Notes: a model not told the origin generated them from the letters alone. Counted from the stretch's first letter, positions 2 through 58,327 are shown. The stretch is DNA of 64,000 nt from Podarcis pityusensis (GCA_964106645.2 OZ067041.1), one strand, 5' to 3'. Numbers and translations are program-made.

Positions 2-1093
2 GTGATTGATGTTCCCAGTGTTTTCCAGGATAACCCTAGACAACCAAGCACCTCGGAGGAGTCATCTTCTGAGGAGGAGCTGCCCCCTCAGCAGGTGGCC
101 GCTGCCAGCGACCCGGCCCCCCGTGACGACGCACCACGGGGCGGAAAGCGGAAGGCGAAGAAGCAGCACCGGTCGAAGAAAAGCAAGAAGAGGGACACTT
201 CGGACTCTGAGGAGGAAACAGGTACCTCTTCATCAGATGGGGATAGTGACACTCCAATGGAGACATATTGGGGGGAGGGGGAGGACGTTGGAGCCCCCCA
301 GTGGGTGCATGAACGGAGGGCCAACTCACACAGGAAGGCATTTAATGGCACGCTTGATTGGAAGGATGGGGCTCTGGTCCCAGACGTTAAAGTCTCAACC
401 AACGCTGCCACTGACTTTATTCTGGGGAACCACCTCTCTAAGAGGAAGAGGAACAAGATATTGAATGGCAATTACGTAGATATGTTTTCCTTGCTGCCCC
501 CAGCTCAGGTCAAGGGAAAAGGGGAAAAAATTAAGTACTATGGGAAAAGGAGGTACAGGGTACCCCGGGTAGAGCGAACGTTTGAGAATTGGCTTAATGG
601 CTATCAGGTGTTTATGGCTGTGGTGTCAAGTTGCTATCCTAAGAGGGGCGCGCACCTCGTGTCCTACCTGGCACACGTCAGGAGGGCACGGGAGCAGGCA
701 GGAGATGAAGCTGCTTTGGCGTATGATGAAGACTTTCGGAGGAATGCCTCGCTGCTGTCTTCAACGCGCTGGGACCAAAAGGACAACAATTGCTGGTTCG
801 AACATGTGGGGCTCAATATCGAGAAGAAAACCGCTCATCAGCCAAAAGCTGGTAAGGTGGAGACCCAACGCCGTAGGCAGTGCTGGGACTTCAACAAGGG
901 TATCTGTCAGCGCGTTACCTGTAAGTACCTGCACGAATGCGATAGGTGCTTAGGCAGCCACCCTGCAGTCAACTGCTTCAAAGGGAGGCAGCAGCCCTTT
1001 CGGGGGGGCAGGGGTCACCTCTCCCGGGGAAACAGGGGTGGCTCCGCCGGACCTGCAGCCCCCGCCCAAGGGCCAGCTGGGGCTCGTTACTAA
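2..1093 (+). CDS. Gag-like ORF1 (partial, open at window edge) with C-terminal CCCH plus CCHC-like zinc fingers
   Basis: CWDFNKGICQRVTCKYLHEC-DRCLGSHPAVNC motif, acidic/basic low-complexity N-terminal region, RG-rich tail; lies upstream of RT. Confidence 0.85.
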   Translation: MIDVPSVFQDNPRQPSTSEESSSEEELPPQQVAAASDPAPRDDAPRGGKRKAKKQHRSKKSKKRDTSDSEEETGTSSSDGDSDTPMETYWGEGEDVGAPQWVHERRANSHRKAFNGTLDWKDGALVPDVKVSTNAATDFILGNHLSKRKRNKILNGNYVDMFSLLPPAQVKGKGEKIKYYGKRRYRVPRVERTFENWLNGYQVFMAVVSSCYPKRGAHLVSYLAHVRRAREQAGDEAALAYDEDFRRNASLLSSTRWDQKDNNCWFEHVGLNIEKKTAHQPKAGKVETQRRRQCWDFNKGICQRVTCKYLHECDRCLGSHPAVNCFKGRQQPFRGGRGHLSRGNRGGSAGPAAPAQGPAGARY

Positions 1094-2702
1094 CATCTCC
1101 CTAGGCCTCGCGTGCTCTCTGATAAAATTGGAGCCATTGAGAGCACTCTTGAAGTTCTATCCAAATAGACGTGCAGCTCACCTACTGGAGGAAGGGTTTT
1201 CTGAAGGTTTTAGAATTCCGGTTGCTTTTACACCCAATTCCAGTTGCCCCCCTAACCAGAAATCAGTCTTAGAAAGGCCCGACATCGCGCTTAAAAAGAT
1301 ACAGAAGGAGATTACAGCCGGCAGGGTAGCCGGTCCATTCGCAACTCCGCCTATCGAGGGGCTTCATATCTCCCCGCTTGGTATTGTCCCAAAGAAGGCC
1401 CCCGGTGAATTTAGAATGATACACAACCTGTCCTATCCCAAAGGAACATCGGTTAACGACGCCATTCCCCAAGAGATGTGCACGGTGAAGTATTCTTCAT
1501 TCGATCAAGCTGTGCGGTTGGTGCGGAGCTTTGGCAGGGGCGCCTTTTTGGCAAAATGTGACATCGAGTCAGCATTTCGCCTACTCCCGGTTCACCAGGA
1601 AGACTACCGCTGGTTGGGTTTCAAATTCCAGGGAGCTTACTTCATTGACAAAGCTATGCCCATGGGTTGTTCTATTGCCTGTGCTGCGTTCGAGACCTTC
1701 AGCACATTCCTGGAATGGGCCCTAAAGTTTAGAACCGGTGCTCTAGGGGTGGGTCATTATCTCGATGATTTTATTTTGGTGGCAAGGGACGCTGGGGAGT
1801 GTAGGTCCCTCCTCCTAGCCTTCGAGTCCTTAGCCAGGGAACTGGGGGTCCCCCTGGCAGGTGAGAAGACCGAGGGTCCGGTCACTACCATGACCTACCT
1901 GGGCATTGAACTTGACACCGTAGCCCAAACCTCGCGCTTACCGGCTGAAAAATTGGTTGCCTTAAGAGAGCTTATCGGCCAAATGCTGCCCCTAAAGAAG
2001 GTCACCTTGAGACAAATTCAATCCCTCTTGGGGCACCTCAACTTTGCCTGCCGTGTAATTTCCCCCGGTCGCCCTTTCTGCGGCCGCCTGGCAAAGCTGT
2101 CCACGGGCTTACGGTCACCCCATCATAGGGTACGCATTCCCAAGGCAGTGAAGGCGGACCTCCTGGTTTGGTTGCAATTTCTGGACGGTTTCAATGGCAT
2201 ATCACTTTGGCAGGATAGTTTGGCGCTGCAGTCTGATTTCCAGGTACATTCGGATGCGGCCGGGTCCTTAGGTTTTGGGGTCTACTTCAGGGGCCAGTGG
2301 TGTGCCCAGCACTGGCCTCCCTCCTGGCAAGGTAAACCGATACTACGTGACTTGACATTCTTAGAATTCTTTCCCATCGTGGTTGCAATTCACTTATGGG
2401 AAGACCAGTTCAAGAACCATAGGGTCTGTTTTTGGACGGACAATCTAGCGGTCGTGTCAGTTTTGAATAAACAATCGTCACGCTCACCCAGAGTAGCGTC
2501 CCTTTTACGGTACTTCGTCCTCTCCTGCCTGCGGTTGAACCTTCACGCTTCAGCCAAGTTCGTCCCTGGTATTGATAATAACATCGCGGATGCTCTATCT
2601 CGTTTCCAGATGGAACGCTTTCGCTCATTGGCGCCGGATGCGCAGCAGCAGCCGCAACCATTCCCGGAGCACCTCTGGAATATTGGCAACGAGAAGCAAT
2701 AA
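1038..2702 (+). CDS. Reverse transcriptase / RNase H (pol); frame is open from 954 and overlaps gag in the +1 frame
   Basis: RT motifs SPLGIVPKK, KCDIESAFRLLP, MPMG, YLDD, YLGIELD; RNase H motifs SDAAGS, LEFFP, TDN, ADALSR. Confidence 0.95.
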   Translation: MAPPDLQPPPKGQLGLVTNISLGLACSLIKLEPLRALLKFYPNRRAAHLLEEGFSEGFRIPVAFTPNSSCPPNQKSVLERPDIALKKIQKEITAGRVAGPFATPPIEGLHISPLGIVPKKAPGEFRMIHNLSYPKGTSVNDAIPQEMCTVKYSSFDQAVRLVRSFGRGAFLAKCDIESAFRLLPVHQEDYRWLGFKFQGAYFIDKAMPMGCSIACAAFETFSTFLEWALKFRTGALGVGHYLDDFILVARDAGECRSLLLAFESLARELGVPLAGEKTEGPVTTMTYLGIELDTVAQTSRLPAEKLVALRELIGQMLPLKKVTLRQIQSLLGHLNFACRVISPGRPFCGRLAKLSTGLRSPHHRVRIPKAVKADLLVWLQFLDGFNGISLWQDSLALQSDFQVHSDAAGSLGFGVYFRGQWCAQHWPPSWQGKPILRDLTFLEFFPIVVAIHLWEDQFKNHRVCFWTDNLAVVSVLNKQSSRSPRVASLLRYFVLSCLRLNLHASAKFVPGIDNNIADALSRFQMERFRSLAPDAQQQPQPFPEHLWNIGNEKQ

Positions 2703-2710
2703 AGGGAGTA

Positions 2711-3574
2711 TTGTCTGCGCTAGCACCTTCTACCCTGAGATCGTATAATAAGGCGTGGCTAGACTTCACATCCTTCCGCATCAAAAAGGGGCGGTCCAAG
2801 CCAGGCAGGCCACCGTCCAAGTCTGAAGTCATAGAGTACATGGTCCACCTTAGAGATCTTGGCCGGGCCCCCAAAACCCTCAATATTCATTCAGCAGCTA
2901 TATCCTTCTTTTCTAAAACTTTATTTTCTGTGGATCCCTGTTCGCATTTCGTTGTGCGTAAGATGCTTGAGGGCTGGCGCAGGTCCAGGCCTCACGGCCG
3001 GGACAGGAGAAGGCCAATAACTTTAGATATACTCACCCAAATCCGTAGGAAGCTGAGGGCCCTGTGTTGGTCAAGATATGAAGCCAGGTTATTTTCAGCA
3101 GCGTTTTCTTTCGCATTTTTTGGCGCCCTACGCATAGGCGAAGTGGTTTGTGAGGACCGCGCAGCGTCCAGGGGGCTACTACTTGAGGACGTAACTGTAG
3201 ACAGGGCGCATGTAATGTTAAGAATCCGTAGTTCGAAGACTGATCAGCTTGGCAAGGGAGCCTTGGTTCGCCTCCAGGCGACTCAAAAGGCGGGCCCTTG
3301 CCCTGTAAAGGATGCTAGAAAATACCTGTGTGTAAGACCAGAACCTAGTGGCCCCTTTTTCTTGCATTCCGACGGTTCCTCCCTCTCAAAGCAGCAGTTC
3401 ACGAGGGTCATGCGCAAAGCAATTGCCGCCATCGGGCTTCCCCAAGAGGAGTACGCCGCGCACTCCTTTCGCATTGGGGCGGCGACCACCGCCGCCCATA
3501 TGGGCTTACCGGCTGAAAGAATTATGGACATGGGGCGCTGGAAATCCAACGCATTCCAGGGTTATATTCGGTAG
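2711..3574 (+). CDS. Tyrosine recombinase (phage-integrase fold); frame open from 2582, no ATG before the N-terminal domain
   Basis: Catalytic set intact: LRIGE (R), SKTDQ (K), HSFRIGAAT (HxxR), GRWKS...Y (W, Y). Confidence 0.95.
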   Translation: MSALAPSTLRSYNKAWLDFTSFRIKKGRSKPGRPPSKSEVIEYMVHLRDLGRAPKTLNIHSAAISFFSKTLFSVDPCSHFVVRKMLEGWRRSRPHGRDRRRPITLDILTQIRRKLRALCWSRYEARLFSAAFSFAFFGALRIGEVVCEDRAASRGLLLEDVTVDRAHVMLRIRSSKTDQLGKGALVRLQATQKAGPCPVKDARKYLCVRPEPSGPFFLHSDGSSLSKQQFTRVMRKAIAAIGLPQEEYAAHSFRIGAATTAAHMGLPAERIMDMGRWKSNAFQGYIR

Positions 3575-3654
3575 ACCTTCTAAATTCCCCTCAGCTTTCC
3601 CCCCGGGCACTCCTCCTGATCCGGTTCTCCGATTCTCTCTTTTCAGGTACTGGT

Positions 3655-4221
3655 GTGGTTCGACTGTGGATCCTCGGCCACAGCATCGTATATTGGGCAA
3701 AGCGGCGCGCCGAACAAAGGGGCTGGGTTGAAGAGCTACGGCTACCCAGCTGGGTCAAACTATCGTGGATCTCTAGGAGGGGTATGCGTTGGGAAGAGTT
3801 TTTCCCAGTTGTATCCAAAAAAATCGCTGCCGAGGGCCCACCCAGTGCCTTGGTCATCCAGCTGGGCGAGAACGATTTGGCGTATAGGAAAGGGGTGAAC
3901 TTGATGTGGAACATTATCAACGACTTGGAATTGTTGAGGGCATCCCATGAAAACATTACAATAATTTGGTCATCTTTGCTGGAAAGGCGATGTTGGCGGG
4001 ATGCAGAGAAACCCGTGGCTGTGAATAAAGCTAGAAGGATTGTGGAGCGCATGGTGGCACGTAGAGTGGCCGCATGGGGTGGTCGGGTCATTCAGCACCC
4101 ATGCATACGGTTTGACAAGGAAATGCTTTATCGCTGGGATGGCGTGCATCTATCTGTTGCGGGAAATGATATTTGGTTGGCTGATATTTTTCAAGGTGTT
4201 AGGGATTGGTTACAGGTCTGA
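3655..4221 (+). CDS. SGNH/GDSL-type hydrolase (esterase) ORF of the element, no ATG start
   Basis: Block I WILGHSIV, block II RGMRW, block III QLGEND, block V DGVHLS; located between YR and the 3' repeats. Confidence 0.85.
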   Translation: MVRLWILGHSIVYWAKRRAEQRGWVEELRLPSWVKLSWISRRGMRWEEFFPVVSKKIAAEGPPSALVIQLGENDLAYRKGVNLMWNIINDLELLRASHENITIIWSSLLERRCWRDAEKPVAVNKARRIVERMVARRVAAWGGRVIQHPCIRFDKEMLYRWDGVHLSVAGNDIWLADIFQGVRDWLQV

Positions 4222-4253
4222 GGGTATTGGCGGCGAGCCGGCTTGCGGCTCGG

Positions 4254-4647
4254 TGGCGGTAGGCATTGGCCGGGGTATTGTCATGCAGATGAGGTTGGGG
4301 GGGAGGAACGCCATCACCTCCCCCAATGCTTGAAGGGTAGTTCGTTAAAGGACTCCGAGGGGCGACGCCTCGTCCGAAACCTACGGAGGCTAGGGCCTAA
4401 AGCGCGCCCCCGAGCGGTAACCCCTCGGGGAGCGCCTAGGGATACGCATCTCGGGTGGCTCCCCCTGTTGGTGTTTAACCCTTCCCGGTCAGACCGGATA
4501 GTCGGTTAGGGGCCAATGCCTAAAGCCAATACCCTTCATTTCCTGTAATCAATAAAGTTGTGGCCATTTTCGCCCATTAACCTAAAACGCTGTGTCCGTT
4601 GTCTTTATTTATTCCACCTGTGGGGGGGGGAGGGAATAGCCACACAA
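4254..4647 (+). repeat. Split direct repeat B1 (394 bp)
   Basis: TGGCGGTAGGCATTGG...GCCACACAA, matches 5039-5432 at offset 785 with no difference seen by eye; AATAAA at 4551-4556. Confidence 0.95.
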
Positions 4648-5038
4648 TGCCCCTTCCGATCGTCAGGAGGAGGGGGGGTTGTGGGATCACGACCCCGCCC
4701 ACTCTCGCTCTCCCGAGGCTGGCGCCAGCCTCGCGGGAGGCAGGGATTCCCCCAATTAGCATCCCCTGTGGCGCCAGCCAATTGGCTGGCGGCAGGGGCG
4801 GGCCTTAGAAAGGCCACTTAAGGTCGGGGAAGCCCTGGCTTGCCCCTTTTCACCCTGGAGACGACGCGGTTTCCCACCCACCCGCCCTTTAGGTTTTGCC
4901 ACTGACATTGCTATGGGCTTCGGCTGGTCGCCGCAAGGGGCCTGGTAGGAGTTTTTCCATTTGGCTAATTGGCTGGTTTTGTGAGCCACTTGGTTTTTTC
5001 GCCTACCTCGTAGCAAATCGTCACAACTCCCTCGGTTT
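4648..5038 (+). repeat. Putative repeat A2 (expected copy of the element's 5' terminus; promoter-like)
   Basis: Unique segment between B1 and B2 as in the A1...B1A2B2 architecture; GC boxes and CCAAT motifs; A1 is not in the window so identity is unverified. Confidence 0.75.
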
Positions 5039-5432
5039 TGGCGGTAGGCATTGGCCGGGGTATTGTCATGCAGATGAGGTTGGGGGGGAGGAACGCCATC
5101 ACCTCCCCCAATGCTTGAAGGGTAGTTCGTTAAAGGACTCCGAGGGGCGACGCCTCGTCCGAAACCTACGGAGGCTAGGGCCTAAAGCGCGCCCCCGAGC
5201 GGTAACCCCTCGGGGAGCGCCTAGGGATACGCATCTCGGGTGGCTCCCCCTGTTGGTGTTTAACCCTTCCCGGTCAGACCGGATAGTCGGTTAGGGGCCA
5301 ATGCCTAAAGCCAATACCCTTCATTTCCTGTAATCAATAAAGTTGTGGCCATTTTCGCCCATTAACCTAAAACGCTGTGTCCGTTGTCTTTATTTATTCC
5401 ACCTGTGGGGGGGGGAGGGAATAGCCACACAA
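5039..5432 (+). repeat. Split direct repeat B2 (3' terminus of the element)
   Basis: Matches 4254-4647; AATAAA at 5336-5341 followed by a GT/T-rich tract; AT-richer host DNA begins at 5433. Confidence 0.95.
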
Positions 5433-5619
5433 GCCTCAAATCCACCTCAATACCAATAAAGTGCCTGAAGTGAATAAGGTTGGAATGAGAGGGGAAAGTG
5501 ACCTATGGTGAGGGAACAGATGAGGGCCTGAACTGCGTGGCACACACAATACATTAGAGTAACTCACAACTGTAAATTGCTGAGAACAGGGAATGAGACT
5601 CTCCATCTAGCACAATCCA

Positions 5620-6340
5620 GTCACTTGTACTGATGGACTGTTCACCAAGAGCACATCTGCTTATTATGATTAGCCCTCACCCAGTCCATGTGAACACACC
5701 AGGATCCAATGTTGAGAAGCAAAACTTTATTTCATCAGTATACTGGCAACACCCATGTCCAAATCTCCCAGTGACCTCTCCCAGTGGTTTCATAGAAACA
5801 CGGAACTTTGTGGTACTTCTCAGGATTAAGAGTCATTGTGCTGAACACCAGCACACCAGTCCCACTTTCTGGAACAGACCTATCAGACAGGAGTGTAACT
5901 GCTTTTAGACAGCGCCTCCAACCTTATCTAGGGCAGGCAACCCAGAAGGATACCACTGGCTGATGCTATTGAACAGTACTGAAAGGTCCAAGAGAACCAG
6001 CAAGGAAGCACTTTCCTGTTGCTCTCCCAGCAAAGGTCATTCACTAGGCTGACCCAAGCCATTGCTGCCCCCAAATCAGGCTGGGAGCTGCAATGAAAGG
6101 GGTCTAAACAAATCTGTACCGTCCAGCAATGCCTTCAGCTGAACAGCCACAAGCTGCTGAAATGTTGTATCACCAAAAAGCCAAGAAAGATTAACTACTG
6201 GTTTATAGCTGGCTGAATCAACAGGTCCAGAGAAGGCCTCACTACTCCCTCCTTCAAGGCAGCCAGAACATCTCCCTCTCTCAGTCAAAGCCTTCTGGAC
6301 CCAACTAGCAATTCTCATGTAGCTTGATTTCACCAGCCAA
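5620..6340 (-). mobile_element. Old degraded L2/CR1-group LINE RT relic
   Basis: Minus translation DSASYKPVVNLSWL...QLKALLDGTDLFRP resembles the NYRPVSNL...LDPFQSGFRP region of L2 RT; boundaries approximate. Confidence 0.5.
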
Positions 6341-7544
6341 GATGGGCAATGGTCAAGCAGACAGGTGACAGGCTACAACTCTCCAACCACACTGCTCTTC
6401 ACTTTTTTAAAAAAAACCTCTTCAAAAATTGCATTTTCCCAAGATGGCAAAAAGCAGCTAAGAAAAATGACCCACAGGCAGTGACGTAGGTGCTTCTATC
6501 CACCCAGCGAGCACTCCTGACTGCAGCTTCCAGCTTAAGAGAAAAACATAACCAAGGCCACACTTGTGGAAGCATTCATGCAAGCAAACATCACAAGTAG
6601 CTAGGCCTAGGTTAAGGTTGCAGAATTGTACCTTCCCACCTCCCTCCTTCCTGCAGCTGGTCTTGCCTGTGGTTAAGCAGTGTCAGCAGCAATGCTAACC
6701 ACACAAGGTTTGAAACCAAGTGTTTTTGAAATGGTTAGTACATTTGGCAGCATTGCCCCAAGTCTCTGTGCCCTCTTTACGTCTCCCAGAAGATGCCCCA
6801 TGCCCAGGCATCCACAACTTCTAGTCAATGCCCTTTGTTGTGGTTCTTTGGTCCTGTTGGTTGGGAATGTTGGACCACCATAGAAAAAAAGAGGTTTGCC
6901 AACATGCTCAGCATAGAACAGCATGTTGTTGCAGTGCTTGGGAACTGAACCCTTAATCCATAAACTACCATATACCCTAATTCAAAGAGGCAGGCTACAG
7001 AATGCAGCCAGTCTTTTTCTCTACAAGGTGCCAATTCATTCTCATTTAACACCACCTCTCTATAGGGCCCTCCTGACAACCTATTTATTGAGTGATCACC
7101 CTGATTTGCTTGCACAGAGTTTACATAGAGGTTAAACTGCTTTTAAAATTAATTTTACTGTACGTATCAGATGTATACAATATAACATAATAGTATGAGA
7201 TAACAGTGGTCCTATTACAGTGGACCCCAAAATGCTTATGGTACTATAATTTCTTGAATTCTGTTGCATCAATATGTGACAAACATGCTCCAATTTTCAA
7301 TAAAAAGGTTGCTTAGTTGCCTGCCCTCTCTCCTAACGAATTAGTTAACTTCACCATATAAACTATGTCCCAGATCCTTAAAATCCACTCTTCTAATGTT
7401 AATTCCCAGTTTGCAAGAATTGTGATACCTGCTGCTCTCAAGAGGTTATTATCATTTCTTCAGATAGGACTAGGTCTTTTACACAGTTAAATAATACAAC
7501 TGATGAATCTAATGGTAGTTTATATCCCCAGAAAGATCACTCAC

Positions 7545-9558: not shown

Positions 9559-12500
9559 CAGCCAGGCAAAAGCATTCAAGGAGGGTGCAAAGCAGGGCCA
9601 GTGAAGGGCAGGCCTAGGGGGCAGGGATAATCCCAACAGCCAGATCGGCTTGGAGTGCAAGAAATATTACCATCTTTGCCACTTTACTTATGCATCACCT
9701 TATACTATAAGTGTCTCAAGGCAACCCAAAGCACAAAACACTACATACAACAGTAAAAAAAAAAGAGATCATGCACCAATTTAAACATCCCAATCCTAGC
9801 TTTCCGTACAATCACCATGAACAGCAGACTGAAACAAACTGTTAAATAGGAGGAAAGAAAAAATAATAACAGGCAGGTGCCTGGGTGGAAATTTTCAGTC
9901 TGGTGCTGAAAAGGCAGTAATGCCAATGCCAGACAGGCCTAATTGGACAGGGCATTCCACAGACAGGGAGCCACTACTGAAAAGGCCCTCTTATGTAAAT
10001 GCCCTATGTAATTTCTCAAGTACATACCATACATATATACACTTGCCCAGAAGCACGACTGAATCCAGCTCCCTACTGAGTGCACACACTGTAAGAAACT
10101 CAGTGTTGCTTCGGTGTAACATAGAAAATTATCCCTTCTTCCTTCATCCAAGCAACATGTTGGGTACAAAGCAATATTGTTCTTGTTCTCACATAATGAT
10201 CACCTTTCTTCATTCAGATATGACAATGGGTTGCATTCAACTAACTTCTACTCAGAGCAGAGCCGCTGAAATTAATGGCCATGGTCCATGGGTTTACTCT
10301 GAGTAAACATTGGTTGACTACAACCAACCAAGTATCCCAGGGGCTGTACAAACATTCTGTGGATTTAAGATTGGTAAAGCACATGAGGACCTCATGGACC
10401 AAACAGAGAAATGGCTAATCCTAAAATGGCAGTAAAAGAAACCACAATATGCAACACAAGAGTCACCTCTATGGCCAGGTAGTAATTCGTAGTCTCATTT
10501 TGGTAAATGTGGTTGGATCCCAAAATATATCAATTCTAGTGCACCCAAAAACCTGCTAGGCCTTGGTGTCCATGTAAGCAGCTTTCATTGTGGCATTGGA
10601 TCAATTAAATAATCTGCCGTACAGTGAACCAAAGGCATCAGAGATTTACTTTGGTTGAGAAGACACTGAAGGTACTGAAGAGCCTTGCCAGATTCTAGCA
10701 CACTGAGTTTCTGCTCTGGGTGGGTTGATGCTTCTGCCAGATTCTTGGCATCGATTCCAGAACCCTGCAACATCCCTCATCTAAACCAAACCTGGTTGTG
10801 GGCTCACACACTGAGTTGCCTAGCAATGACAGTGTGATTATTCCTCCTCCTTTTCAGTCTAACCAAGTAGCTGAATTGGCACAGGAGGCAGCAGCAAAGC
10901 AGCAAATGGAGGATGCACAGAGGCCTGGCCTGCTGCCCATACCTCGGCCTGCCTTGGGAAATTAGGGTTTAACTTAGCATGGATGCCGATGGGTAACACC
11001 TATATGGAGAGGGCAGGGTGTGACAAAGGAGCAGCAAAAGGCAGGGACAGAATGATATAGTTAATCTTTTAATATTCATTTAACGCTAACTGGGTGTGCT
11101 AATCATAATTTTTGTTGTTTAAGCACAGCGAAGCAGTAATGCTACAGCTAACTGGGAGGTTATTCTGCTATTGTAGCCTGAGAAGATAGGAGGCTTGGTG
11201 CCATAAAGTGTTCCCACCTGTCTAGCTTCAGCCAGGCAGTATAGGCATGGAAGATCTCTATGGTCTGATCTCTATGTCCCAGACATTCAAAATCTGGGAA
11301 CGGCTGGTGAATGGTGCAGACACCCACACCCACCTTCTCCAGACCACAACAGGGCTTGTGCTTGTTTTGCTCAGGAACCTTGAGAGATTTTGCTGGGAAA
11401 GGAGGAGCCAATTGGTTACGGCAGTGTCTACCCCTCTTCTGCCTTCAACTTGGCTCTCTCAGTGCTCAGCTCAAGTTGCTTGGCTTCGGAACCTCAGTCT
11501 GTGGTCAGAGAGAGAAAGATGAATTATGGCAGCATGAGCCCTGGGTGAGACCATTAGTAGCTGGTGGCGGGTGGAGTGGAGATACACTGCCCAGCCCAAC
11601 CCGATCCCTTTCCAGCTGTTTCTGTCTTTTAGGGCTGTTGGGAGGTTTAAGAAATAACAAGAGCCCAGATGGATCCGACTACGGGCTCTTCAAATCCAGC
11701 ATGCTGTTTGGAACAGCGACCAGCCATATGCTGCTGGGAAGCTTAAAAGTCAGTAAGCCTTCCTCTGTTATCTGTCCCCAGTATCCAACATGCAGAGACA
11801 CCAGCATCACTCGACAACAAAATGTTGCAGCACGCAGTGCTTCTGGCTCAGGTTTCTAGCCACTTCATTTCATCCACCCCCTCATTTCCCTTCCTCTCCA
11901 GTCATTCTGTGCTCAATGTGCAAGCTCCATCCTCACGTGCTGTTTTGGAGTTTGTTTCTTCTTCTTTACTTCTTTGAGGGGGTGGGCATTGGACAGACTT
12001 GTGCCCAATCCCAGCTGCATTAATTCTTTACTCAATGGGCAAATCTCCTGGTGAACTGGTTATAGAGCATCACACTTGGACTGGAGAGACCCAGGTCCAA
12101 ATCCCACTACAGCCATCAACTCACTGGGAGACCTTGGAGCACTCACTATCTCAATCTAACCTACTTTACAGGGTTGTTGTGAGGATAAAAAGGAAGGGGG
12201 AAAAGAAAGCCATGAACACAGCCTTGGACTTCCTGGAGGAAATGTGGGGCACAAATGTAGTAAGAAACTAAAATTGTTTCTAAATTCCCCATTGAGAACT
12301 ATGCAAAGTTCTCTCTTTCATTCTACCCTCTCATCCTGTTCCAGCCACTATTTTCAGTAGAGAATCAACAAGGTTGAGATGATTTAAATGAACTGTATTT
12401 AAATTATGTTTTCATTTATTTAATCAAGTAGAAAGAGAGTAAATAAAAGAAGTGCTTTATAGGTATGTTAAGCGGTTTTATGGTACAACGGCGGCTTGGC

Positions 12501-13942
12501 CATATTGTGTCAAACAGACATGCTCAGAATAAATAATTTGTAAGTCAGACCATTGGTCTATCTAGCTCAACACTGTTTATGCTAACTGGCAGCTGTTCTT
12601 CAAGATTCCAGAAATGGGTCTTTCCTAGTCCCACCTGGAAATGGAACCCTGAGACCTTCTGCACCCAAAGCAGATACTCTACTACTGAGCTAAGGCCCTA
12701 GTGGTAAGAAAGTCTTGTACACTTTCTCAAAGCTTTTCAAACAAGAAACTTGAAAACAGTTTTTTATTCTGCCATGCTAGATATAGATTCTGACCAAAGG
12801 CCTGAAATAAACTGCAAATCTATTTATAACATAGAGTTGAGATGCTGGTCAATTGACCGCCTATTACTTGACTGCCGTCAAATATTCCATGAAGTCAAGA
12901 ATGCCTTTGTATAAGCGGCAGATTTCTTTTCTTTTCTTTTTTACTGCATCCCATGGTCCTCTTGAGAGCAATGATACAAGGGCTTCTGTGTACTGGTTAC
13001 TTGTAAATAAAACCTCTAAGCAGTTTATAATAGCAGCTGCCTGGTGTCATTAATTTTTATTTTTATTTTAAAAAGGTAGACTGTATTGCACTTTTCATCA
13101 CATCTGAGTCTCAAAGTGGCTCACTATGGGCATGAGGATAATACACTATTTGGAGACAGTACTCTATCACCTATGTAATTCTCTATACAGTACTGTTGTT
13201 CTACCAAACTGATGTTTTCAGCAACGTCCAACTGAGTCCAATCAGCTGTTCATCTTGCTAGGACCTTGTCTCAAAAAGTGGGCAGTCCCAGGTGCATTAA
13301 TAGGGGTAGGATGCAAATGCTGCCCATTTTCCAATACTCAATACATTGGGAAGACCTGAAATCTTGCATTTGCACCATTGATCACAACTATATTTTCTGA
13401 CAGAGCACTCCACGGGTTATCAGTAAGAACACATTATTTTGCTTGAACCAGGAAGTTCCTCAGTTTCACTGAAACCCTATCACTTAATGTTATGTACATA
13501 TCAATTCAAGGATATATCTATGCACATGGGCCTATTTTAATATCTTTTTAAAAAGCATCTTAGAAGCTTTCACAACTAACTTTCCAGTCAAAGAAGCCAT
13601 AGGTGTTTTATCAGGTGTGCGGCATGAAGACAACCAATAAAGTTAGTGGTGAACACTTAATTATTTAAGCTTTCATTAGATTTCAGCAGCACTTTGAATT
13701 CCTGGCACATTTAAAACAAAGTATATCATGTAACCCCTTGATGACAGAGGTGGTGGCCAAACAGTAAAATATTTGGCAGCATTCTTAATTCCCCATTCTA
13801 AACACAGCCTACTCTGAACAGGTAAATTCAATCAGTTAATCCTTATAGAATGTCTTATCTTTCTTGATCAACCATTCAAAAGGCCTCGTGATGAAAAAAC
13901 AGAGATGCCAGTGTTTCTGCCCACCATGCTACTTAAGCAGTA

Positions 13943-14168
13943 CAGTGGTACCTCGGGTTACATACGCTTCAGGTTACAGACTCCGCTAACCCAGAAATAG
14001 TGCTTCAGGTTAAGAACTTTGCTTCAGGATGAGAACAGAAATTGTGCTCCGGCGGTGCAGCGGCAGCAGGAGGCCCCATTAGCTAAAGTGGTGCTTCAGG
14101 TTAAGAACAATTTCAGGTTAAGAACGGACCTCCGGAACGAATTAAGTACTTAACCCAAGGTACCACTG
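13943..14168. mobile_element. Tc1/mariner-type MITE
   Basis: TIR CAGTGGTACCTCGGGTTA / TAACCCAAGGTACCACTG, TA on both sides; multi-copy in the window. Confidence 0.9.
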
Positions 14169-15723
14169 TATTTGTAATTGCCAGGTCCTTGGTAACTGAA
14201 AATAAGCTTTCCTAGATTGCGCTCAAGGCAGGTTTGGGTGGGTGGGTGTGTGTGCCTAAGAAGATTATATGGGATTGAGATCAAGTGTCGATCTCCCACC
14301 ACTATGAATATTGCAAAAGGCTATCAGTTTTCACCAGACACTGAACAGTCTGTTAGCCCACCCTACTGCTTCAACAAAGCTTGTTGAGGAGATACTCAGC
14401 TAGACTCAATGCCCAAGAAGAGACTGGGGTGGGTGGTGGGGGACTCTGGACTGTGGGAAAGTAAAGAAAAAATAGGGGCAAAAACTGAACCAACCAACAC
14501 CTTCAGCAAACATTGCTGTGCCATTAAAGTAGAGCAGCAAGGCCTCAAGAATTCCCCCTTCCCAGCTGCAACAAAGATTAAATAAGAAATCCTTCCACAA
14601 TCTCATCTCTCTCTCAGCCTGTTCACACATGCTTAAGGTACACACTTGGGTAAACTTAAGTCTCATGCCAGCAGATGCAACCATAAAGTGTGAATGTGAC
14701 AAACCAGCAGCTGAAAACATGCATCCAACACACATGATTAGAGACAGCCAGGATTTGCTATGGTTTCTGGTAGAGAGTATGGTCAGAGGCAAAGCCAGGT
14801 AATGTATAAAACAGCCATCCCTACTTCTGGAAGTTGGCAGAACTATAGAAGAATTGCATATTGAAACCATGGAAATCAGGATGCCAATTCAGCACATCTT
14901 TGCATAATTAGTACAGGATTTCCATATTATACAAATTGTGTCACCTGGAATGTGGTAACTAAAAAGACATTGCACACTGCAATCCAACCTGCAATCATAA
15001 CCCTCCAATGGTTTGCATGAACAGCAGTAATTTGCGTAGCAATCCATAAATAGTCCCTGGGAAAGTCAAAGCATCGTCTGAATTAGAAGCAAACTACTGC
15101 TAAAATTATATGTGGAGACACTCCTATTGTTACTATTACTAAAGTACAGTACAGATGGTGTGCTAGGTGCTGTACAAATTATATTAAGGCAATAAAGTAT
15201 CTAAATAAAATTAATTTTAATTTTGGACAGGAGTAAAACACCAGTTTATTAGAACTTGCATGTCACCCCATGTTTGTTCCACTCTATATAACCTACTTTT
15301 CTGGAGCAAATAAACATATTTCACTAATTAGATTTATAGCATGCCTTATCCCCAAGGCACTGGGTGGGTACAAATATGTCATCACCTCCTTTATGCTCAC
15401 AATAACCCTGTGAGGGAGGTCACAATTACTGATATTTTGCAGTTGGAAAACAAATGCAACAGCAACTTGCTCAGGGTCACCAAAATAGACAATTGTTGCA
15501 ACCTGGCATCAAATCCCAGCTCAGAACTATAACATCACCAGGACATACAGCACCAAGCAATCTGAAGCATATTTACTCAGAATTTCTAAAGATTTCAGTG
15601 AGATTTGCTTCCGAGCAATAAATTTTTGGGTTGGTCTTTAATGTCACAAAAAGTTATCTGCAGGCATTCTCTGGTTTGGTATCGCACTCTTGAGTTAGGA
15701 ACCCTAGTCACATACAATCTATA

Positions 15724-15938
15724 CAGTAGTACCTCGGGTTAATTACTTAATTCGTTCTGGAGGTCCGTTCTTAACCTGAAACTGTTCTTAACCTGAGGTA
15801 CCACTTTAGCTAATGGGGCGTCCCGCTGCCGCCGCGCGATTTCTGTTCTCATCCTGAAGCAAAGTTCTTAACCCGGGGTACTATTTCTGGGTTAGCGGAC
15901 TCTGTAACCTGAAGCATCTGTAACCCGAGGTACCACTG
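15724..15938. mobile_element. Tc1/mariner-type MITE (same family as 13943, inverted)
   Basis: Same TIRs, TA TSD. Confidence 0.9.
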
Positions 15939-18900
15939 TATATTCAACACTAATCCCCATCCTAGCCCACATGGATAATCTAGGTGAGTGGTAAAGCTTC
16001 TACAGTGTTACCTCCAGTTGTGGACAGGATCCGTTCCGGATCCTGAGGCTTTCACAATTGGAGAGACCGCTTCTGCATGCACACACGCGGCAAAAACCCA
16101 GAAATATATGTTCGGGTTTGCTGCTTACATATCCTGAAGTTTATGTAACCGGAGGGATACGTAAGTTGAGATACGATTGTACTTGTTTTAAAGACCACAA
16201 CAGTAACTCTATACCCCAGTATTATGAAGTACCTCTTCTCTAAAGTACTTCCTCTTTTGCACTACCACCCCTCCCAACAGCAATGCTGGGAATTGCCTTT
16301 AGTGCTCAAACCCCATAGATTAACTTCAGCTTGACTCCTGACTCGCTGTTCTGGAGATTGTCACTCTCCCCTGCAACTGATTAGCTTACAGTGGCATGTG
16401 AACCAGGCCTAATTCTGGGTTCCTGGAACTGTGTGAACATGCCAGCTCCTGCTGAGAAGCCCTTAGCCACCTCCTCCCCAGTCCTCTTTACTACCATGAT
16501 ATGCTGAGTAAAAACAGAGGAGCAAAGCAACCTCTATGGAAGCCACTTGCCAACACGATCCCAATAAACTATAATTTGGCTTACAATGGCATGTGAGTTG
16601 TGAATCAAGCCATATTCACACTAGTTGCTAGCACCCCGTTCGTGCATGTGTGATTTCCTCAGATCAGGGAAGAGGAACCTTTCTGGCCACTCCTAAGGGT
16701 CAACTCTGACAGGTGGGTGGGACAACCCACGCATCAATCATGTGATGCCTCACCTACCTGGCAAAGTCCACTTGAGCAGTGCTTCCCAAGCTCCCGACAA
16801 CATTGTGAACCACAGAGCAAGGGGGTTCGACAGTCCTACGCCCAGCACTTCAGAAGCTCTGAGCACTGGCCTTGCTCAGCAACTCCCAAACGCCTGGCAA
16901 CCAGCTGGTTGTCAGGAATTTGGGAAGCACTGTGCAAAGTGCTTTGTAAGCCCTGTGGTCAGCACTTCTCAGCTCCCAAGCATACGGCTGACATAGCTGC
17001 TTTCTGCAGGGATCAGCTGTGGGATCAAGTTCCCCATGGGAACCTGAACTCACAATGCATCACCCAATGGGAGATGACTTTAACCCTTCTACGTGCAGGG
17101 ATGGGACATGGAACTTGTATGTAGAGACAACTCCCAATTTACACAGGGGTTACATTCCAAACTACCATGTATATTTGAAACACAATTGAAAATGCCAGCA
17201 AACACCCCGTTCCGCCCCTTTCTGTGACTCTTTGGGTCACTTTCAGGTTCAGCACGGTCACACACATATCGGACGTGTCTAAAACAGTCGCTCCCTGCAA
17301 CTGATGCTCACACTAGCTGTTACTGCCCCATTCATACATGTATGATTTTTCTAGATCGTCAGTGCATCCCAAGAAAACTTGACAGCCCAGACTGGACTGA
17401 TGGCTTAGGGAGTGACAAAGATGCAGAGACTTCAGAAAGCCCAATGTGGCCTGCAGGTTACTTAGTGAGAAGCTGAGAAATGAAACATGAAAGGCAAGCT
17501 CTCACTATGCAACTATAAAGTTGGCCAATATGTGCAAACCTACCTTATGTATGTTTACAGAGAAGCCAATCCTACTGAGTTTAATGAGGTTTACTCTTAA
17601 GCAAACATACTCAGGGCTTCCAGCCAAGTCTGACAAACAGGACCACCACATCTATACTTCACATCTTAAAGCAGTTTAGAACCAATTTCACAAAAAAGAC
17701 TTCCGAGAAAGATCCCTGAGGAATTATGGCTTTTGTGAAGGTTCTGGGAATTCTGTGCTAAGAATAGCCTCAACACTTCACAGCACTCCACATCCAAGGA
17801 GTCTTCAATCTGGAACCGTGGCATTTATAAACCAGTATGAAAGTGCCTTTATACCCCTTTAACAGTCACAGCTTTCCCCAAAGAATCCTGGAAACTGCAG
17901 TTTATCCCCACAGGCCTACAATTCCCAGCACCCTTAACAAACCACAGTTCCCATGATTATTTGGGGAATGCCATGTGCTTTAATACATGGTGTGGACGTG
18001 ACTTAGAAATGCCCACAAAAATAGATGACAATATACCAGGACGGGTTTGATCACATCAAGTAACACCACTATTTATAAAACATATATTGCCTTGGGAGTT
18101 TTGAGATCACTTTGTTCCCATTAACTCTGTGATCTGTAGAACAACCCTGCAAATTAACGCAACACTCTATTTCCCAAAGTACAGCTTGGGACAGGGCTAT
18201 AATAAGGGTGGGCCTTCATAAGACCATCTAGCTAGTATGCAAGACTTTCCCTGGCTCACAGCTTATTTCCACCCTCTTGCAAAACCCATGTTTGGGGATG
18301 GGGCAGAACTAATATGAACCACAATACTCTGGAGCAGCCTTTCTCAACTCCCATCATCCTTGACCAGTGGCCATGCTAGCTAGGGATGCTGGGAGTTGTA
18401 GTCCAACGACACCTGGGGACACAAGGTTGAGAGTGATGGGGAGAACTCAGCCAACAGGAACACCTGGCCCAGAAATGCAACAGTTAAATCCAATGGTATT
18501 GCTCTGTGCTTCTCAAATCCATGAAACTTCTCACAGATTAGAAAGCAGGAAGAAACATCAAGTATGATGTATAATATGATCCAAGAGCTTAGAAGAGGGG
18601 GAGGAGAGGGATAAATAAATGCACGTACCAAACATACACATTTGTTAGCACAAAACACATTTTTATAAGCCTACAGACAGTCAAGTTTTTTTTTAAAGTG
18701 TGTATTATCCTACCCAGCCCTCCCCCACACCAGTTCTCCAAAAGCCAAACCCTTCTTTGGAAGACAGCAGGGCGGGAGGGGGGGCGGAGCTGTTCTACAA
18801 TTTCACTGCATGGCTTGAAAAACAACTTTGATTGGCACTTGGCCTGACCCACAGAGCAAGAAAAAAAGAAAAAGAAAAACAGCTTTGGGACAAAGAGTGC

Positions 18901-24900: not shown

Positions 24901-26178
24901 GAGTTTTTAGCATTAGCACATCATTTACGTCTAAGCAATGGAAATATATAGGCATATTATAACCTAATTAAGGCAATTAGGTTAGCTCTGAGATTTACTG
25001 GTAAATATTTTCTGACATATCCCACTGAACCTTCTTTTTCTTCAGTACAATGATTACAAACAGAAGACAACATTCCCCAGGGCTGGAATTCTATACTTTC
25101 TTATCTGGAAAGTAAGGCCTACTGATCTCAGTGAAGCTTTATTTTCAAGTAAACATGCAAATTTGTATTTGTTATACTTAGAGGAGACCCATTAAAAACT
25201 CAATGGGCAATTGTATAAATCAGATGTCACCCATATTCTATACACAAACACAAAGACACACACCCTATTGCACTATATTCATTTAGATGGTATGTGAAAC
25301 CAATCCACCACCAAACCACCCCTTTTTCTTTTACTGACAACATGATCGGCTATTTTTTGATGTTGCCAGGCTGTATACAATTTTATCAAATGCTATTATT
25401 ATTATTATGCTTTTGTTTAAGTGGTTCAGTACCAACTGTAACCACACTGAGCACCTTTCAAGAACAAGTCACACTAAAAGCACATGAACAAATAATAAAT
25501 TATGCATACATTGTATTAAAATGATATGCATATTTTATGCAATTTTAATATACAATATATACATACAATATGTACAGTATTATCCTACTTTACTATGCAA
25601 TTATAAACAACCTTACATTATAAACAAAAGAACACAGTTTTAAAACTTTTTAAAACAACCAAATAACCTTAATATAGCTAGCACTTAAAAGCAGCCAGCC
25701 CAATACACTTTGTAATATAAAAATAATGGGCTGGCTCCAGACTAATTTAGCCACGCTTTACCCTCATTAAAAATGATTGGATTTTTCTTAGTCGTAATTA
25801 ACAGCACAAGCCCAACCACATCACATCTACTTAGAAGTAAGTCCTATCGAACTCAACAGGGCTTAGTCCCAAGTAAATGTGGTAACAGGACTGTCAGTTG
25901 TCCCATGGACTGCAATGGGGCTACTGCATGGCTAACTTAAGGCTGCAGTCCCAACCCCACTTACCTGTGAGCAAGCCCCACTGGGACCAGCACAACTTAC
26001 TTGTGAGCAAAAAAACGGTTAGGATTGCAGTTAAGTCTACATCCAGCTGGATATGGTTCTTATTATTTTTACACAGCTATACTATGCAAATCATACCTAT
26101 TTTATACAACTTTACTACTGGATAGGAAAACACACAAACTGCTCTCTTGATATATACATATGTATTTAGAGATAGGGT

Positions 26179-26710
26179 TGTATCCAAATTAAGTCCTGCT
26201 CAGAGCAGACCCGCCGAAATTAATAGGCATGGCTAACCTGGATACATTCCTTTCTGAGGGTCCTAGAAGTTAGTTGCAGACAACACCGGCTGCCCCAAGT
26301 TCTATCTACTCACAAGTAGAGCCACTGAAACCAAGGGACCCAAGTCAGCCTTGCCCATGGGACTTCAGTGGGTCTACTCTGAGGAGGGCTATTGCGTTGT
26401 ATCCCAGCTAAGTCCTCCTCAGAGCAGACCCACTGAAATTAATGGACATTGCTAATCTGGATACATTCATTTCTGAGGGTCCTAGAAGTTAGTTGCAGGC
26501 AACCCCTCGCTGTCCAAGTTCTACTCACAAGTAGAGCCACTGAAACCAGGTGACCCATGTCAGCCATGCCCATGAGCCTTCAGTAGGTCTACTCTGAGGA
26601 GGGCTACAGTTTTGTATTCCAGTTAACTGCTCCCCAGAGCAGACCCACCGAAACCAGCAGACCTAAGTCAGCCATGCCCATGGGACTTCAGTGGGTCTAC
26701 TCTTGAGGAG
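26179..26710. repeat. Tandem array (~2.5 units of ~219 bp) built from small palindromic MITE modules
   Basis: Unit tgtatcc...ctcagagcagaccc...gggtctactctgaggagggcta recurs at ~26179, ~26398 and ~26612. Confidence 0.8.
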
Positions 26711-26829
26711 AACACGAGCTACCAACGTACCTCACAGGTACACTAGATTTCACACTTACACACATATAACGCCTCATTATAATATATTCTTTAGGATAAC
26801 CCTGACTGACTGACACACGTACACAAGCA

Positions 26830-27800
26830 GCCCTACGCGAAGGTGAAAGAGCCCCCCCCCACCACTTCAGCGGGGCGCGCGCCCCCCCCCTTTATAAGAG
26901 TTGGCCGAGGGGGCGTGGCCCGAGCGCAGCAGCCCAACGGTCTACAATCGGGAGAGGCGAGCAGCATCTCCGAGCGCCTTCGGGCAGAAGTCGCCTCCTC
27001 CGATCGGGCTCCCCCCCCCCACCACCAACCGCCCGATCCCCGCGCGCGCTGCTCCCCAACGTTCCACAGCACCGCGCGCACGCGCGGAGGGGTGTATGTG
27101 TGTGTTTGTGTGAGGAACGTGACGGGGGTCGACGTACACCCACCTGCCTCAGCACTTTCCGGCAGTTGCTACAGACCCTCCGGCACTCTCCGTGGCCGCT
27201 GCCGCCGGGGACGGACGAAGGGCAAGAAGCGGCGCCCCTGTTCATGGTTGCCGGAGCCAGCGGGGGCAGAGGGAGGCGACTGGCTGCAGCGGCTGCCTGC
27301 GCTCAGCGCTCAGCGCCTCCGGCCGCCGCCCCCATCCGCCGCTCCCCTCCTCCTCCTCCTCTTTCCCCCTCCCGCCCCCCTGGAAGCGCTTCGGCTTCAG
27401 CCGCTCAGGAACAGCCGCTGCCATCCCCGCCCCGCCCACCAACCGCGGCTCTCCCTCGCGCGCACACCCCTCGGCCGCCGCCAATCGCCGCGCCTCGGCC
27501 ACGCCTACCCGCAACCCCCGCCTGGCCAATCGCAGGCGCCGGCCACAGCCAGCCAATCGGCCGAGCGTTCTCCCGCTCCCCATCTCCGGGCAGTCTCCGA
27601 GTTGGAGGAGGGGCCGTCCCGCAAACGGGGCGGAGAGAAGAAGGGAGCTTCTCGGCAACCTATAAGGGGGCGGAGGAGGTGGGGCCAGGTGGCGCGAGGC
27701 GGGGCTTCCCTCGGCCAATGGGACGCGGGCCATGTCCATGGGCTGGAGGTGGGGGAAAGGCACCCACGAGGTGGTCACGCCCCCGTCTCTCAGTGCTTAC
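26830..27800 (-). promoter_or_regulatory. CpG-island promoter of an unidentified minus-strand host gene
   Basis: Very high GC and CpG content; CCAAT boxes at ~27481, ~27526, ~27553 and ~27715; GC boxes; minus-strand splice donor at 27143. Confidence 0.85.
27144..27430 (-). other. Candidate first exon (5' boundary approximate); ATG at 27245 gives 34 codons up to the donor
   Basis: CAG|GTGGGT donor downstream of the CCAAT cluster; peptide MNRGAASCPSSVPGGSGHGECRRVCSNCRKVLRQ not recognised. Confidence 0.55.
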
Positions 27801-27842
27801 TGCTGTTGCTGCTATGGCAGGCGCAGGAAAGGGAGGCAGAAT

Positions 27843-27920
27843 AATAGAATGGTGGAGTTGGAAGGGACACCGAGGGTCATCTAGTCCAACCCCCTGCAAT
27901 GCCGGAATATTTTTGCCCAA
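27843..27920 (-). mobile_element. 3' part of tRNA-SINE / CR1-like tail
   Basis: Reverse complement of the 9425 SINE tail. Confidence 0.7.
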
Positions 27921-28054
27921 TGGGGGGCCGGGACCCAGGATCCCCAAAAATATTAATCTATTAACTGGTTTTGCTTTTACATTTACATTTTTTCTTCTGC
28001 AAACACCCTCCACAAACCAGCCAGTATTTAAAAACACATAACTTCCTCTTGCTT

Positions 28055-51495: not shown

Positions 51496-51524
51496 TACTT
51501 CGTATTTCACATGCAAACTATATA

Positions 51525-51766
51525 CAGTGGTACCTTGGGTTACATACGCTTCAGGTTACATACGCTTCAGGTTACAGACTCCGTTAACCCAGAAATAGTA
51601 CCTTGGGTTAAGAACTTTGCTTCGGGATAAGAACAGAATTCGTGCTCCAGCGGCATGGCGGCAGCAGAAGGCCCCATTAGCTAAATTGGTGCTTCAGGTT
51701 AAGAACAGTTTCAGGTTAAGAACGGACCTCTGGAACGAATTAAGTACTTAACCCGAGGTACCACTG
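51525..51766. mobile_element. Tc1/mariner-type MITE
   Basis: Same family as 13943; TA TSD. Confidence 0.9.
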
Positions 51767-57916: not shown

Positions 57917-58021
57917 AATGGAACAAATTAGAATAGTGAGAAATAATAATAATAATTCATGAGCATCACACTGACTAACCATTAGCACAATCTGAAAAAT
58001 GCGGTGCATTTTGATAACTAG

Positions 58022-58143
58022 CGTTCTCGAAGCTACCAGCATGAGTTTGACCAAACTGCGGGAGGCAGTGGAAGACAGGAGTGCCTGGCGTGCTCTGGTC
58101 CACGGGGTCATGAAGAGTCGGACACGACTAAACAACAACAACA
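58022..58143 (+). mobile_element. BovB extreme 3' fragment
   Basis: Matches 36440-36568. Confidence 0.9.
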
Positions 58144-58327
58144 AACCTTAATTTCCACAAGGACTAGAAACGCGTTCTGTTTTAGAATAAGAACATTGCA
58201 AAGGTTTGACATGGGCCCCATGCTTTGCCTTTGAACAGTAGTTCCCAACTGGTGGTCCGCAGACCCCCAGGGGGTCCACATTAAACCACCCAGGGGCTCC
58301 ATGGCACCATTCACATAACAAAAAACT

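Follow-up and report, generated by a model that had tools for sequence, protein, structure and literature searches.

The first 5432 positions of a 64,000-nucleotide (nt) stretch of Podarcis pityusensis DNA (GCA_964106645.2 OZ067041.1; hereafter the window, meaning the whole stretch that was analysed) hold, on the plus strand, what we identify as the 3' portion of a Ngaro-type tyrosine-recombinase (YR) retrotransposon of the order DIRS. We found that the space between the stop codon of its hydrolase open reading frame (ORF) and its poly(A) signal is filled by a conserved non-coding domain of ~310 nt (positions 4222–4534), which is predicted to be structured. Comparison with other Ngaro lineages indicates that this predicted fold is kept from frog to lizard by compensatory change. 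An initial annotation of the window had proposed a compact multi-helix domain inside repeat B, a direct repeat of this element; the proposal is borne out by compensatory changes over diverged lineages.

A predicted fold shared by frog and squamate lineages

We fetched genomic loci around homologues of the hydrolase and the YR, and compared 11 domains, namely that of the window and those of 10 other Ngaro lineages. The latter are from Podarcis muralis (loci L001, L002, L003, L004 and L013; hydrolase 47–77% identical to that of the window), Lacerta agilis (L006; hydrolase 54%, YR 60%), the geckos Eublepharis (L007; YR 48%) and Sphaerodactylus (L014; YR 44%), Anolis sagrei (L008; YR 44%, no hydrolase) and Xenopus tropicalis (L015; YR 38%). 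In one further contig, from the European Nucleotide Archive (L005), the sequence is cut inside the domain. Beyond the nearest relative, the DNA is alignable in two blocks only, one running from the end of the hydrolase ORF to the 5' strand of the closing helix P1 and the other from the 3' strand of P1 to the poly(A) region; the ~240 nt between these blocks are diverged.

Independent minimum free energy (MFE) folds of all 11 domains gave one architecture. An outer helix P0, a hairpin H1, a single-stranded linker (GUGGCGG in the window, with GGCGG shared by all) and a long closing helix P1 of 12–20 base pairs (bp) form a three-way junction, and P1 closes a multi-branched interior of ~110–260 nt. 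In squamates the interior consists of H2, of P2 around H3, P4 and P5, and lastly of H6; the interiors of Anolis (~135 nt) and Xenopus (~110 nt) are shorter. All 11 domains are more stable than their dinucleotide shuffles (z = −1.8 to −9.7), and 8 of the 11 beat all 100 shuffles. The interval originally annotated in the window (4254–4530) stood up to this control with z = −3.64 (0 of 200 shuffles as good), and the full domain (4219–4540) gave z = −4.2 (0 of 100). Folded under the consensus constraint, the window's domain reaches −154.4 kcal/mol, within 4.4 kcal/mol of its MFE.

Covariation was assessed for a structure of 56 pairs on a sequence-only MAFFT alignment of seven lacertid copies, with two controls: sliding of the 3' partners by 1–3 columns, and 500 column shuffles. 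Paired cells made up 90.1% of the total (33–58% when slid), 12 pairs had changed on both sides (1–6 when slid) and the covariation score was 0.187 (at most 0.094 when slid); none of the 500 shuffles matched the observed paired fraction or covariation score. Compensatory changes occur in P1 (U-A to C-G in L003, with the innermost pair found as C-G, A-U, G-C or U-A), in H3 (G-C to U-A in three of the seven lacertid sequences, and C-G in two gecko-type sequences), in P2 (U-A to A-U) and in P4a (G-C to U-A). The covariation envisaged in the initial annotation was therefore found among lacertids but only in part beyond them: with geckos added to the MAFFT alignment, RNAalifold recovered H3 alone. 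MAFFT moves the helix registers by one column between sub-groups, for which reason a sub-domain model was dropped.

For the deep lineages, P1 was tested from anchors only, by searching the 25 nt that follow GGCGG for complementarity to the 70 nt that precede AAUAAA, with shuffles as control. The best duplex outperformed the shuffles in every lineage, with p ≤ 0.0045 in ten and p = 0.022 in the eleventh. P1 has at least five unrelated sequences across lineages, for example AUAGUCCUUGGCCAU/AUGGCAAGGACUAU in Xenopus. P0 is part of the independent MFE fold in most contexts of the first repeat copy, B1, again with at least five different sequences, such as GUGAGUGGUU/AACCACUCAC in L004; its 5' strands GGGUAUUGGC, GUGAGUGGUU, GGAGCGUUGGC, GAUGGC and GGGGUUGGC are unrelated to one another, and each has its own matching partner.

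From the 12-nt P1 of the window alone nothing follows, as inverted repeats with exact seeds of at least 12 nt within 320 nt number 60 in the window, most of them from other transposons. Hence, the significance of P1 rests on the comparative evidence and not on the helix itself. Since inverted repeats of 12 bp are so common here, and GC-rich sequence folds stably anyway, the domain might be thought a functionless GC-rich repeat that folds by chance and is similar between lineages from common descent only. That P0, P1, H1, H3 and P4a stay paired while their sequences diverge completely, in elements with YR identities of just 38–60%, makes such an account scarcely credible.

Predicted architecture of the window's domain

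The coordinates of all features are collected in Table 1. The outer helix P0 (GGGTATTGGC/GCCAATACCC, 10 bp) had been overlooked in the initial annotation, most of whose other helices are present: its 12-bp helix is a perfect complement on direct reading (P1), its G/C hairpin lies at ~4294–4327 (H2), its CCGG..CCGG element at 4485–4497 and its CGAGCCG/CGGCTCG hairpin at 4234–4252 (H1) were both found, and GAAGGGT (4332–4338)/ACCCTTC (4478–4484) is retained as P2 with compensatory variants, GGGU/ACCC in six sequences and GGGA/UCCC in L004. Two annotated arms did not survive the comparison. The GGAC..CGAGG/CCTCG.TCC arm with a GCGA loop is not conserved, and the long arm at 4396–4440 with a GTAA loop forms only in the window and in an 88%-identical Podarcis copy (L001); in the other lineages the bases of both arms are engaged in H3, P4a/P4b and P5. 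In place of these arms, distant homologues use H3 with its GUUAAA loop, P4 (GGGGCG/CGCCCC) and P5 (GGGGAGC/GCUCCCC). Since the arms that would carry them are not conserved, the two proposed GNRA tetraloops, and with them the argument for a tertiary fold, lose their basis. The inner pairs of P4a vary by lineage with pairing retained (GGUCGU/ACGACC, GGGGCUUGC/GCAAGCCCC).

No conserved pseudoknot was found among the compared domains. Two candidate tertiary pairings, one between the H3 loop GUUAAA and UUUAAC at 4474–4479 and the other between the linker GGUGGC and the H2 loop GCCAUC, were rejected, as by eye each occurs in some lacertid copies only and shows no compensation.

Table 1. Coordinates of the predicted RNA features, repeats and ORFs of the Ngaro element in the window.
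Feature	Position	Strand	Remarks
P0, 5' strand GGGUAUUGGC	4222–4231	+	1 base past hydrolase stop codon; outside repeat B
P0, 3' strand GCCAAUACCC	4525–4534	+	perfect 10-bp complement of 4222–4231
H1 hairpin CGAGCCG/CGGCUCG	4234–4252	+	direct TGGCGG repeats on both sides (4228–4233, 4254–4259); B1 context only
Linker GUGGCGG	4253–4259	+	single-stranded, conserved; GGCGG comes first among the conserved motifs of repeat B in all lineages
P1 (closing helix), 5' strand TAGGCATTGGCC	4260–4271	+	perfect 12 bp with 4511–4522
P1, 3' strand GGCCAATGCCTA	4511–4522	+	pairs with 4260–4271
H2, G-rich hairpin	4294–4327	+	in all squamate homologues, stem sequences differ; pairs with double changes
P2, 5' strand AAGGGU	4333–4338	+	pairs with ACCCUU 4478–4483; encloses H3, P4, P5
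H3, 5-bp hairpin, GUUAAA loop	4339–4354	+	compensatory changes
P4 arm: P4a GGGGCG/CGCCCC, P4b GUCC/GGGC (invariant U.G), P4c CCU/AGG	4359–4410	+	MFE folds, covariation
P5 arm GGGGAGC/GCUCCCC with inner extension	4427–4464	+	independent MFE folds; homology at topology level only
H6, variable hairpin	4485–4497	+	absent in L003
AUAGUC motif	4498–4503	+	directly after H6; conserved in most lacertid copies
AAUAAA (4551–4556) and conserved GUUGUGGCC (s2, 4557–4565)	4551–4565	+	15-mer identical in 9 squamate copies
GU/U-rich stretch, likely poly(A) downstream element	4590–4613	+	similar UGUGUC..UGUCUUU stretches in homologues
Repeat B1, 394 nt	4254–4647	+	blastn, 100% identical to 5039–5432
Repeat B2, 394 nt	5039–5432	+	blastn, 100% identical to B1
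B2 copy of domain, without H1	within 5039–5432	+	P1 at 5045–5056/5296–5307
s1 GUCACAACU	5020–5028	+	end of unique A2-B2 segment; complementary to s2 of B2 (5342–5350)
Unique A2-B2 segments	~4870–5038 (window); 6243–6291 (L007); 6178–6351 (L006); 6446–6623 (L003); 10704–10883 (L015)		
gag-like ORF with CCCH finger	2–1093	+	Pfam
Reverse transcriptase (RT) ORF	1038–2702	+	Pfam RVT_1, E = 4e-13
YR ORF, 3' of RT	2711–3574	+	Pfam Phage_integrase, E = 1.2e-5
SGNH/GDSL hydrolase ORF, after YR	3655–4221	+	Pfam Lipase_GDSL_2, E = 2.7e-3

Internal and terminal copies differ at the repeat border

Repeat B is 394 nt long by blastn, where a repeat finder had given only 300 nt. After the hydrolase the order is B1-A2-B2, and the element ends at 5432, where the identity of B2 stops; its 5' end, like A1, is outside the window on the upstream side. 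Pairs of A1 and A2 are present in the complete homologous copies (L003, L006, L007 and L015). In all lineages the GGCGG motif that opens repeat B directly adjoins P1.

H1 was found in 10 of 10 B1 contexts, and also in L005, but is absent from 6 of 6 B2 contexts. With H1 before every B1 and in no B2, the difference seems to follow in a deterministic way from the making or selection of B2. The bases directly before B2 still resemble the 5' strand of P0 (window 5025–5044, and the B2 borders of L003, L006, L007, L008 and L015), and B2 is therefore predicted to form a single continuous extended helix, the 23-nt arms of which (5034–5056/5296–5318) are 87% complementary. We conclude that the predicted structures of the internal (B1) and terminal (B2) copies are distinct in a conserved manner.

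A second difference involves s1, at the end of the unique segment before B2, and s2, beside the poly(A) hexamer. The helix s1:s2 (GUCACAACU with GUUGUGGC) belongs to the best duplex in all six A2-B2 units analysed (window, L003, L006, L007, L008 and L015), and its pairs change from A-U to G-C in Xenopus, from U-A to C-G in Anolis and from A-U to G.U in gecko. In B2, s2 adjoins or overlaps AAUAAA, and in several lineages s1:s2 pairs part of the hexamer. Such complementarity might reflect an RNA helix occluding the poly(A) hexamer of B2; alternatively, s1 and s2 could be protein-binding sites in inverted orientation.

Several side observations concern the repeats. The unique segment between A2 and B2, which has no repeat after A1, measures 49–180 nt and starts with a conserved C-rich motif (CCCACCC..; window 4873–4887); it is not mentioned in the usual A1-B1-A2-B2 scheme. 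About half of the fetched copies (L001, L002, L004, L013 and L014) have a single B with no A2-B2 after it, an A-int-B form that probably arose when B1 recombined with B2. Alternatively to s1, s2 (4557–4565) can pair with the last bases of repeat B (4639–4647, ..GCCACACAA) in the window and in L003, a pairing compensated in Xenopus (L015; GCUGUGG/CCGCAGU) and weak or absent in L006 and L008. The junction of B-end and A-start in L007 (GGCAGC AA GCTGTGGCC) is palindromic, and hence a candidate recombinase core site. An integron-like GTTRRRY core in GGCGGTTAGGC is lacking in the window itself and in geckos, and we regard it as coincidence.

A predicted 3'-terminal structure and a possible role in replication

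The AAUAAA hexamer is kept in all 11 lineages, with AAUAAAGCUGUGGCC as the Xenopus counterpart of the 15-mer made up of the hexamer and s2, and is accompanied by a GU/U-rich element within tens of nt, as in vertebrate poly(A) signals. Because the domain ends 17–30 nt before this conserved AAUAAA and its GU-rich stretch, it would be a 3'-terminal structure of the element RNA. Three features plausibly point to replication: the GGCGG border that adjoins P1, the restriction of H1 to B1, and the location of the domain just upstream of the poly(A) signal.

We tentatively favour the view that the domain works in cis as a signal for replication, on the plus-strand RNA of the element itself, serving recognition by the RT or initiation. 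The RT, or the CCCH gag-like protein, would recognise the domain as a platform on the genomic RNA, and minus-strand complementary DNA (cDNA) synthesis would start there, near the 3' end of that RNA. Initiation or strand transfer would take place at GGCGG, at the foot of P1, and would thereby set the left border of repeat B, and H1 (in B1) and s1:s2 (in B2) may let the machinery distinguish the internal from the terminal copy.

A number of considerations weigh against a replication signal. The RNA ends, RT binding and priming are all deduced from sequence, and the sample is 11 lineages. Covariation at the level of single pairs was established among lacertid copies only; in geckos, Anolis and Xenopus the interior arms are taken as homologous on the strength of similar MFE topologies. 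Shuffle z-scores of the minus strand are equal or stronger, so that strand assignment by z-score is uninformative, and the excess of G.U over A.C on the plus strand is modest (26 versus 10 cells in the lacertid alignment, 7 of the 26 from one invariant pair). Finally, an element for export, stability or poly(A) choice would occupy the same position.

This last point leads to a 3' untranslated region (UTR) element that acts at the mRNA level, in export, in stability of an intronless RNA or in the choice between the B1 and B2 poly(A) sites, with no direct part in reverse transcription. A location after the last stop codon and ahead of a conserved AAUAAA, itself accompanied by a GU-rich stretch, is what would be expected of such an element, and so are outer helices that differ with context (P0 in B1, s1:s2 in B2) and the pairing of part of AAUAAA by s1:s2 in several lineages, reminiscent of poly(A) occlusion hairpins. 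Occlusion would, however, hit B2, the site expected to be used, and a role in mRNA metabolism leaves unexplained both the repeat border at the base of P1 and the systematic absence of H1 from B2; nor is there similarity to any export or stability element in Rfam. We consider it unlikely, if less so than the other alternatives. The constitutive transport element (CTE) of Mason–Pfizer monkey virus (MPMV), the RNA transport element (RTE) of intracisternal A-particles (IAP) and the poly(A) hairpin of human immunodeficiency virus 1 (HIV-1) are likewise structured and occupy the interval from the last ORF to the 3' repeat or poly(A) signal, and AAUAAA occlusion in this group recalls s1:s2. The Ngaro domain, in contrast, shows no sequence or covariance-model similarity to them, and they have no counterpart of its link to the repeat border or of the H1 difference.

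The z-scores raise the question of whether the fold belongs to single-stranded minus-strand cDNA, as an accessory or recognition site used by the YR or in second-strand synthesis. A YR gene is present on the element, and YRs are known to act on folded single-stranded substrates, as integron integrases do on attC and XerCD on attP of CTX phage DNA. These sites share with the Ngaro domain a conserved structure of variable sequence, a helix that is long, imperfect and variable at its centre and, on the same element, a gene for the YR. They differ in that the Ngaro crossover lies outside the domain: the element terminus (4647/5432) is ~125 nt downstream of P1, so that the domain is not the core site. 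The G.U bias also favours RNA over cDNA, together with the invariant U.G in P4b, the G.U variants in the P0 and s1:s2 helices of geckos, and an absolute folding energy that is always lower on the plus strand. The strand evidence leans towards plus-strand RNA without settling the matter. DIRS-1 cDNA intermediates are linear and single-stranded (PMC7192593), which suits a cDNA fold, yet overall we judge this reading improbable.

Known RNA families and coding potential

We searched Rfam 15 (4227 families) and obtained no match at the gathering threshold anywhere in the window, in agreement with the earlier suggestion of a novel non-coding RNA. At E ≤ 10, the region 3500–6000 gave only chance-level matches to microRNA, small nucleolar RNA and long non-coding RNA families, and none to a ribozyme. 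Other retroelements carry ribozymes, and a self-cleaving ribozyme of a new class could trim the element RNA, for instance where H1 meets GGCGG. The multi-helix fold with its partly conserved unpaired motifs (GUGGCGG, the GUUAAA loop and AUAGUC), and a repeat border exactly at the junction, would fit such an activity. The search at E ≤ 10 covered hammerhead, HDV-like, twister, twister-sister, pistol, hatchet, hairpin, VS and other ribozymes; moreover, the interior, where a core would be presumed to lie, varies widely in size and sequence, and the loop motifs are not conserved outside lacertids. A ribozyme is thus very unlikely.

The domain is predicted to be non-coding, since no ORF is conserved: every frame is interrupted in most homologues, and an 88-amino-acid ORF at 4243–4509 lacks conservation, so that a protein-coding reading was rejected. 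A pattern scan of metagenomes (GGCGGT, gap, AATAAAGTTGTGGCC) yielded four bacterial matches (L009–L012) that we attribute to chance and discarded. In the full-text literature searched, including the Xenopus Ngaro paper and the nematode YR-element paper, we found no description of such a structure in Ngaro or DIRS-1. The domain is a candidate for a new family of cis-regulatory RNAs in Rfam, which would aid the annotation of Ngaro elements in vertebrate genomes.

Priming and comparison with other retroelements

Since the 1980s it has been asked by what means reverse transcription is primed in DIRS and Ngaro elements, and how their split repeats are restored. The primer of DIRS-1 is not known (PMC7192593), which agrees with the statement in the initial annotation that priming in YR elements is unresolved. 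New here are a conserved covarying structure, as predicted, with a base that coincides with a repeat border, and a reproducible structural difference between internal and terminal copies; the domain also offers a concrete, mutable target for assays of retrotransposition, cDNA ends and RT binding.

ARAGORN found no tRNA gene in 3900–5600, and no tRNA family was matched in the Rfam search. As a tRNA primer-binding site TGGCGG was rejected, since the conserved stretch is just 6–7 nt across lineages. The core of P1 (GCAUUGG/CCAAUGC) presumably resembles the acceptor stem of vertebrate tRNA-Gly(GCC), and GGCGAGCC in H1 what we take to be the complement of the 3' end of tRNA-Arg; neither is conserved outside lacertids. 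Resemblances that we assume between TGGCGG and the ends of tRNA-Gly, tRNA-Arg and tRNA-Ser are leads and not tests. Simple fold-back priming with copy-back was also rejected, as it predicts an inverted B2 interior, which was seen in 0 of 6 elements.

A self-priming variant of the replication signal would use P1 itself, in cis, as a primer–template duplex. Cleavage by a host nuclease or by the RNase H of the element, either beside the P1 3' strand or at the border between H1 and GGCGG, would leave a paired 3' end to prime the minus strand from GGCGG, which could then serve as microhomology for a strand transfer that rebuilds B2 without H1. We hold this variant to be quite unlikely; if true, it would be the first defined priming mechanism for YR retrotransposons and a 3'-UTR counterpart of Tf1. 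In the self-priming structure of Tf1/sushi long terminal repeat (LTR) retrotransposons (Levin and co-workers), it is reportedly the transcript's own 5' end that acts as primer, and the structure follows immediately after the 5' LTR. As in Tf1, a duplex of ~11–12 bp (P1, 12 bp here and at most ~20 in homologues) closes a multi-helix RNA next to a repeat border; as is said of Tf1, there would be no need of a tRNA primer-binding site and the RT is of the LTR type with RNase H. Unlike the Tf1 structure, the Ngaro domain occurs twice and belongs to the 3' UTR, beyond the last ORF.

The replication signal that we favour can also be compared with the 3' UTR of R2 and the stem-loops of 'stringent' long interspersed nuclear elements, which likewise stand at the RNA 3' end just before the poly(A) and conserve structure over sequence. 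These non-LTR elements are target-primed, whereas Ngaro uses a YR and presumably extrachromosomal cDNA, and the Ngaro domain is much larger and lies inside a split direct repeat. DIRS-1 requires an internal complementary region (ICR) for retrotransposition (PMC7192593). What the ICR has in common with the Ngaro arrangement is that non-coding repeats close to the 3' end are required for restoring a full element from a partial transcript, but the ICR works by complementarity to the element termini and not through a conserved internal fold.

Coding content of the element and other features of the window

The ORFs of the element support its assignment to Ngaro. None of the four matched a methyltransferase domain in Pfam, in agreement with this group. 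The Phage_integrase match of the YR ORF scores 25.6 bits, slightly below the cut-off of 27.1. We identified 692 relatives of the YR, led by Podarcis, Lacerta, geckos, Anolis and Xenopus, many of them named integrase/recombinase XerD homolog; the RT is 56–84% identical to those of the fetched copies, and the nearest relatives of the hydrolase are from Podarcis muralis (70%, 50%, 52% and 47% identity), with a distant one in Lissotriton. These relationships are in line with a lacertid host.

Elsewhere in the window, a 215-nt tandem repeat of 2.2 copies (26177–26653) lies beside the most GC-rich part (26000–28000, 58%), whose long ORFs had no match in Pfam. Short elements with near-identical terminal inverted repeats of the TACAGTGGTACCTCGGGTTACATAC type occur at 13941–14170, 15720–15942, 51522–51769 and 58020–58453, and one pair among them has inverted arms of 117 nt; they look like relics of DNA transposons of the miniature inverted-repeat transposable element type.

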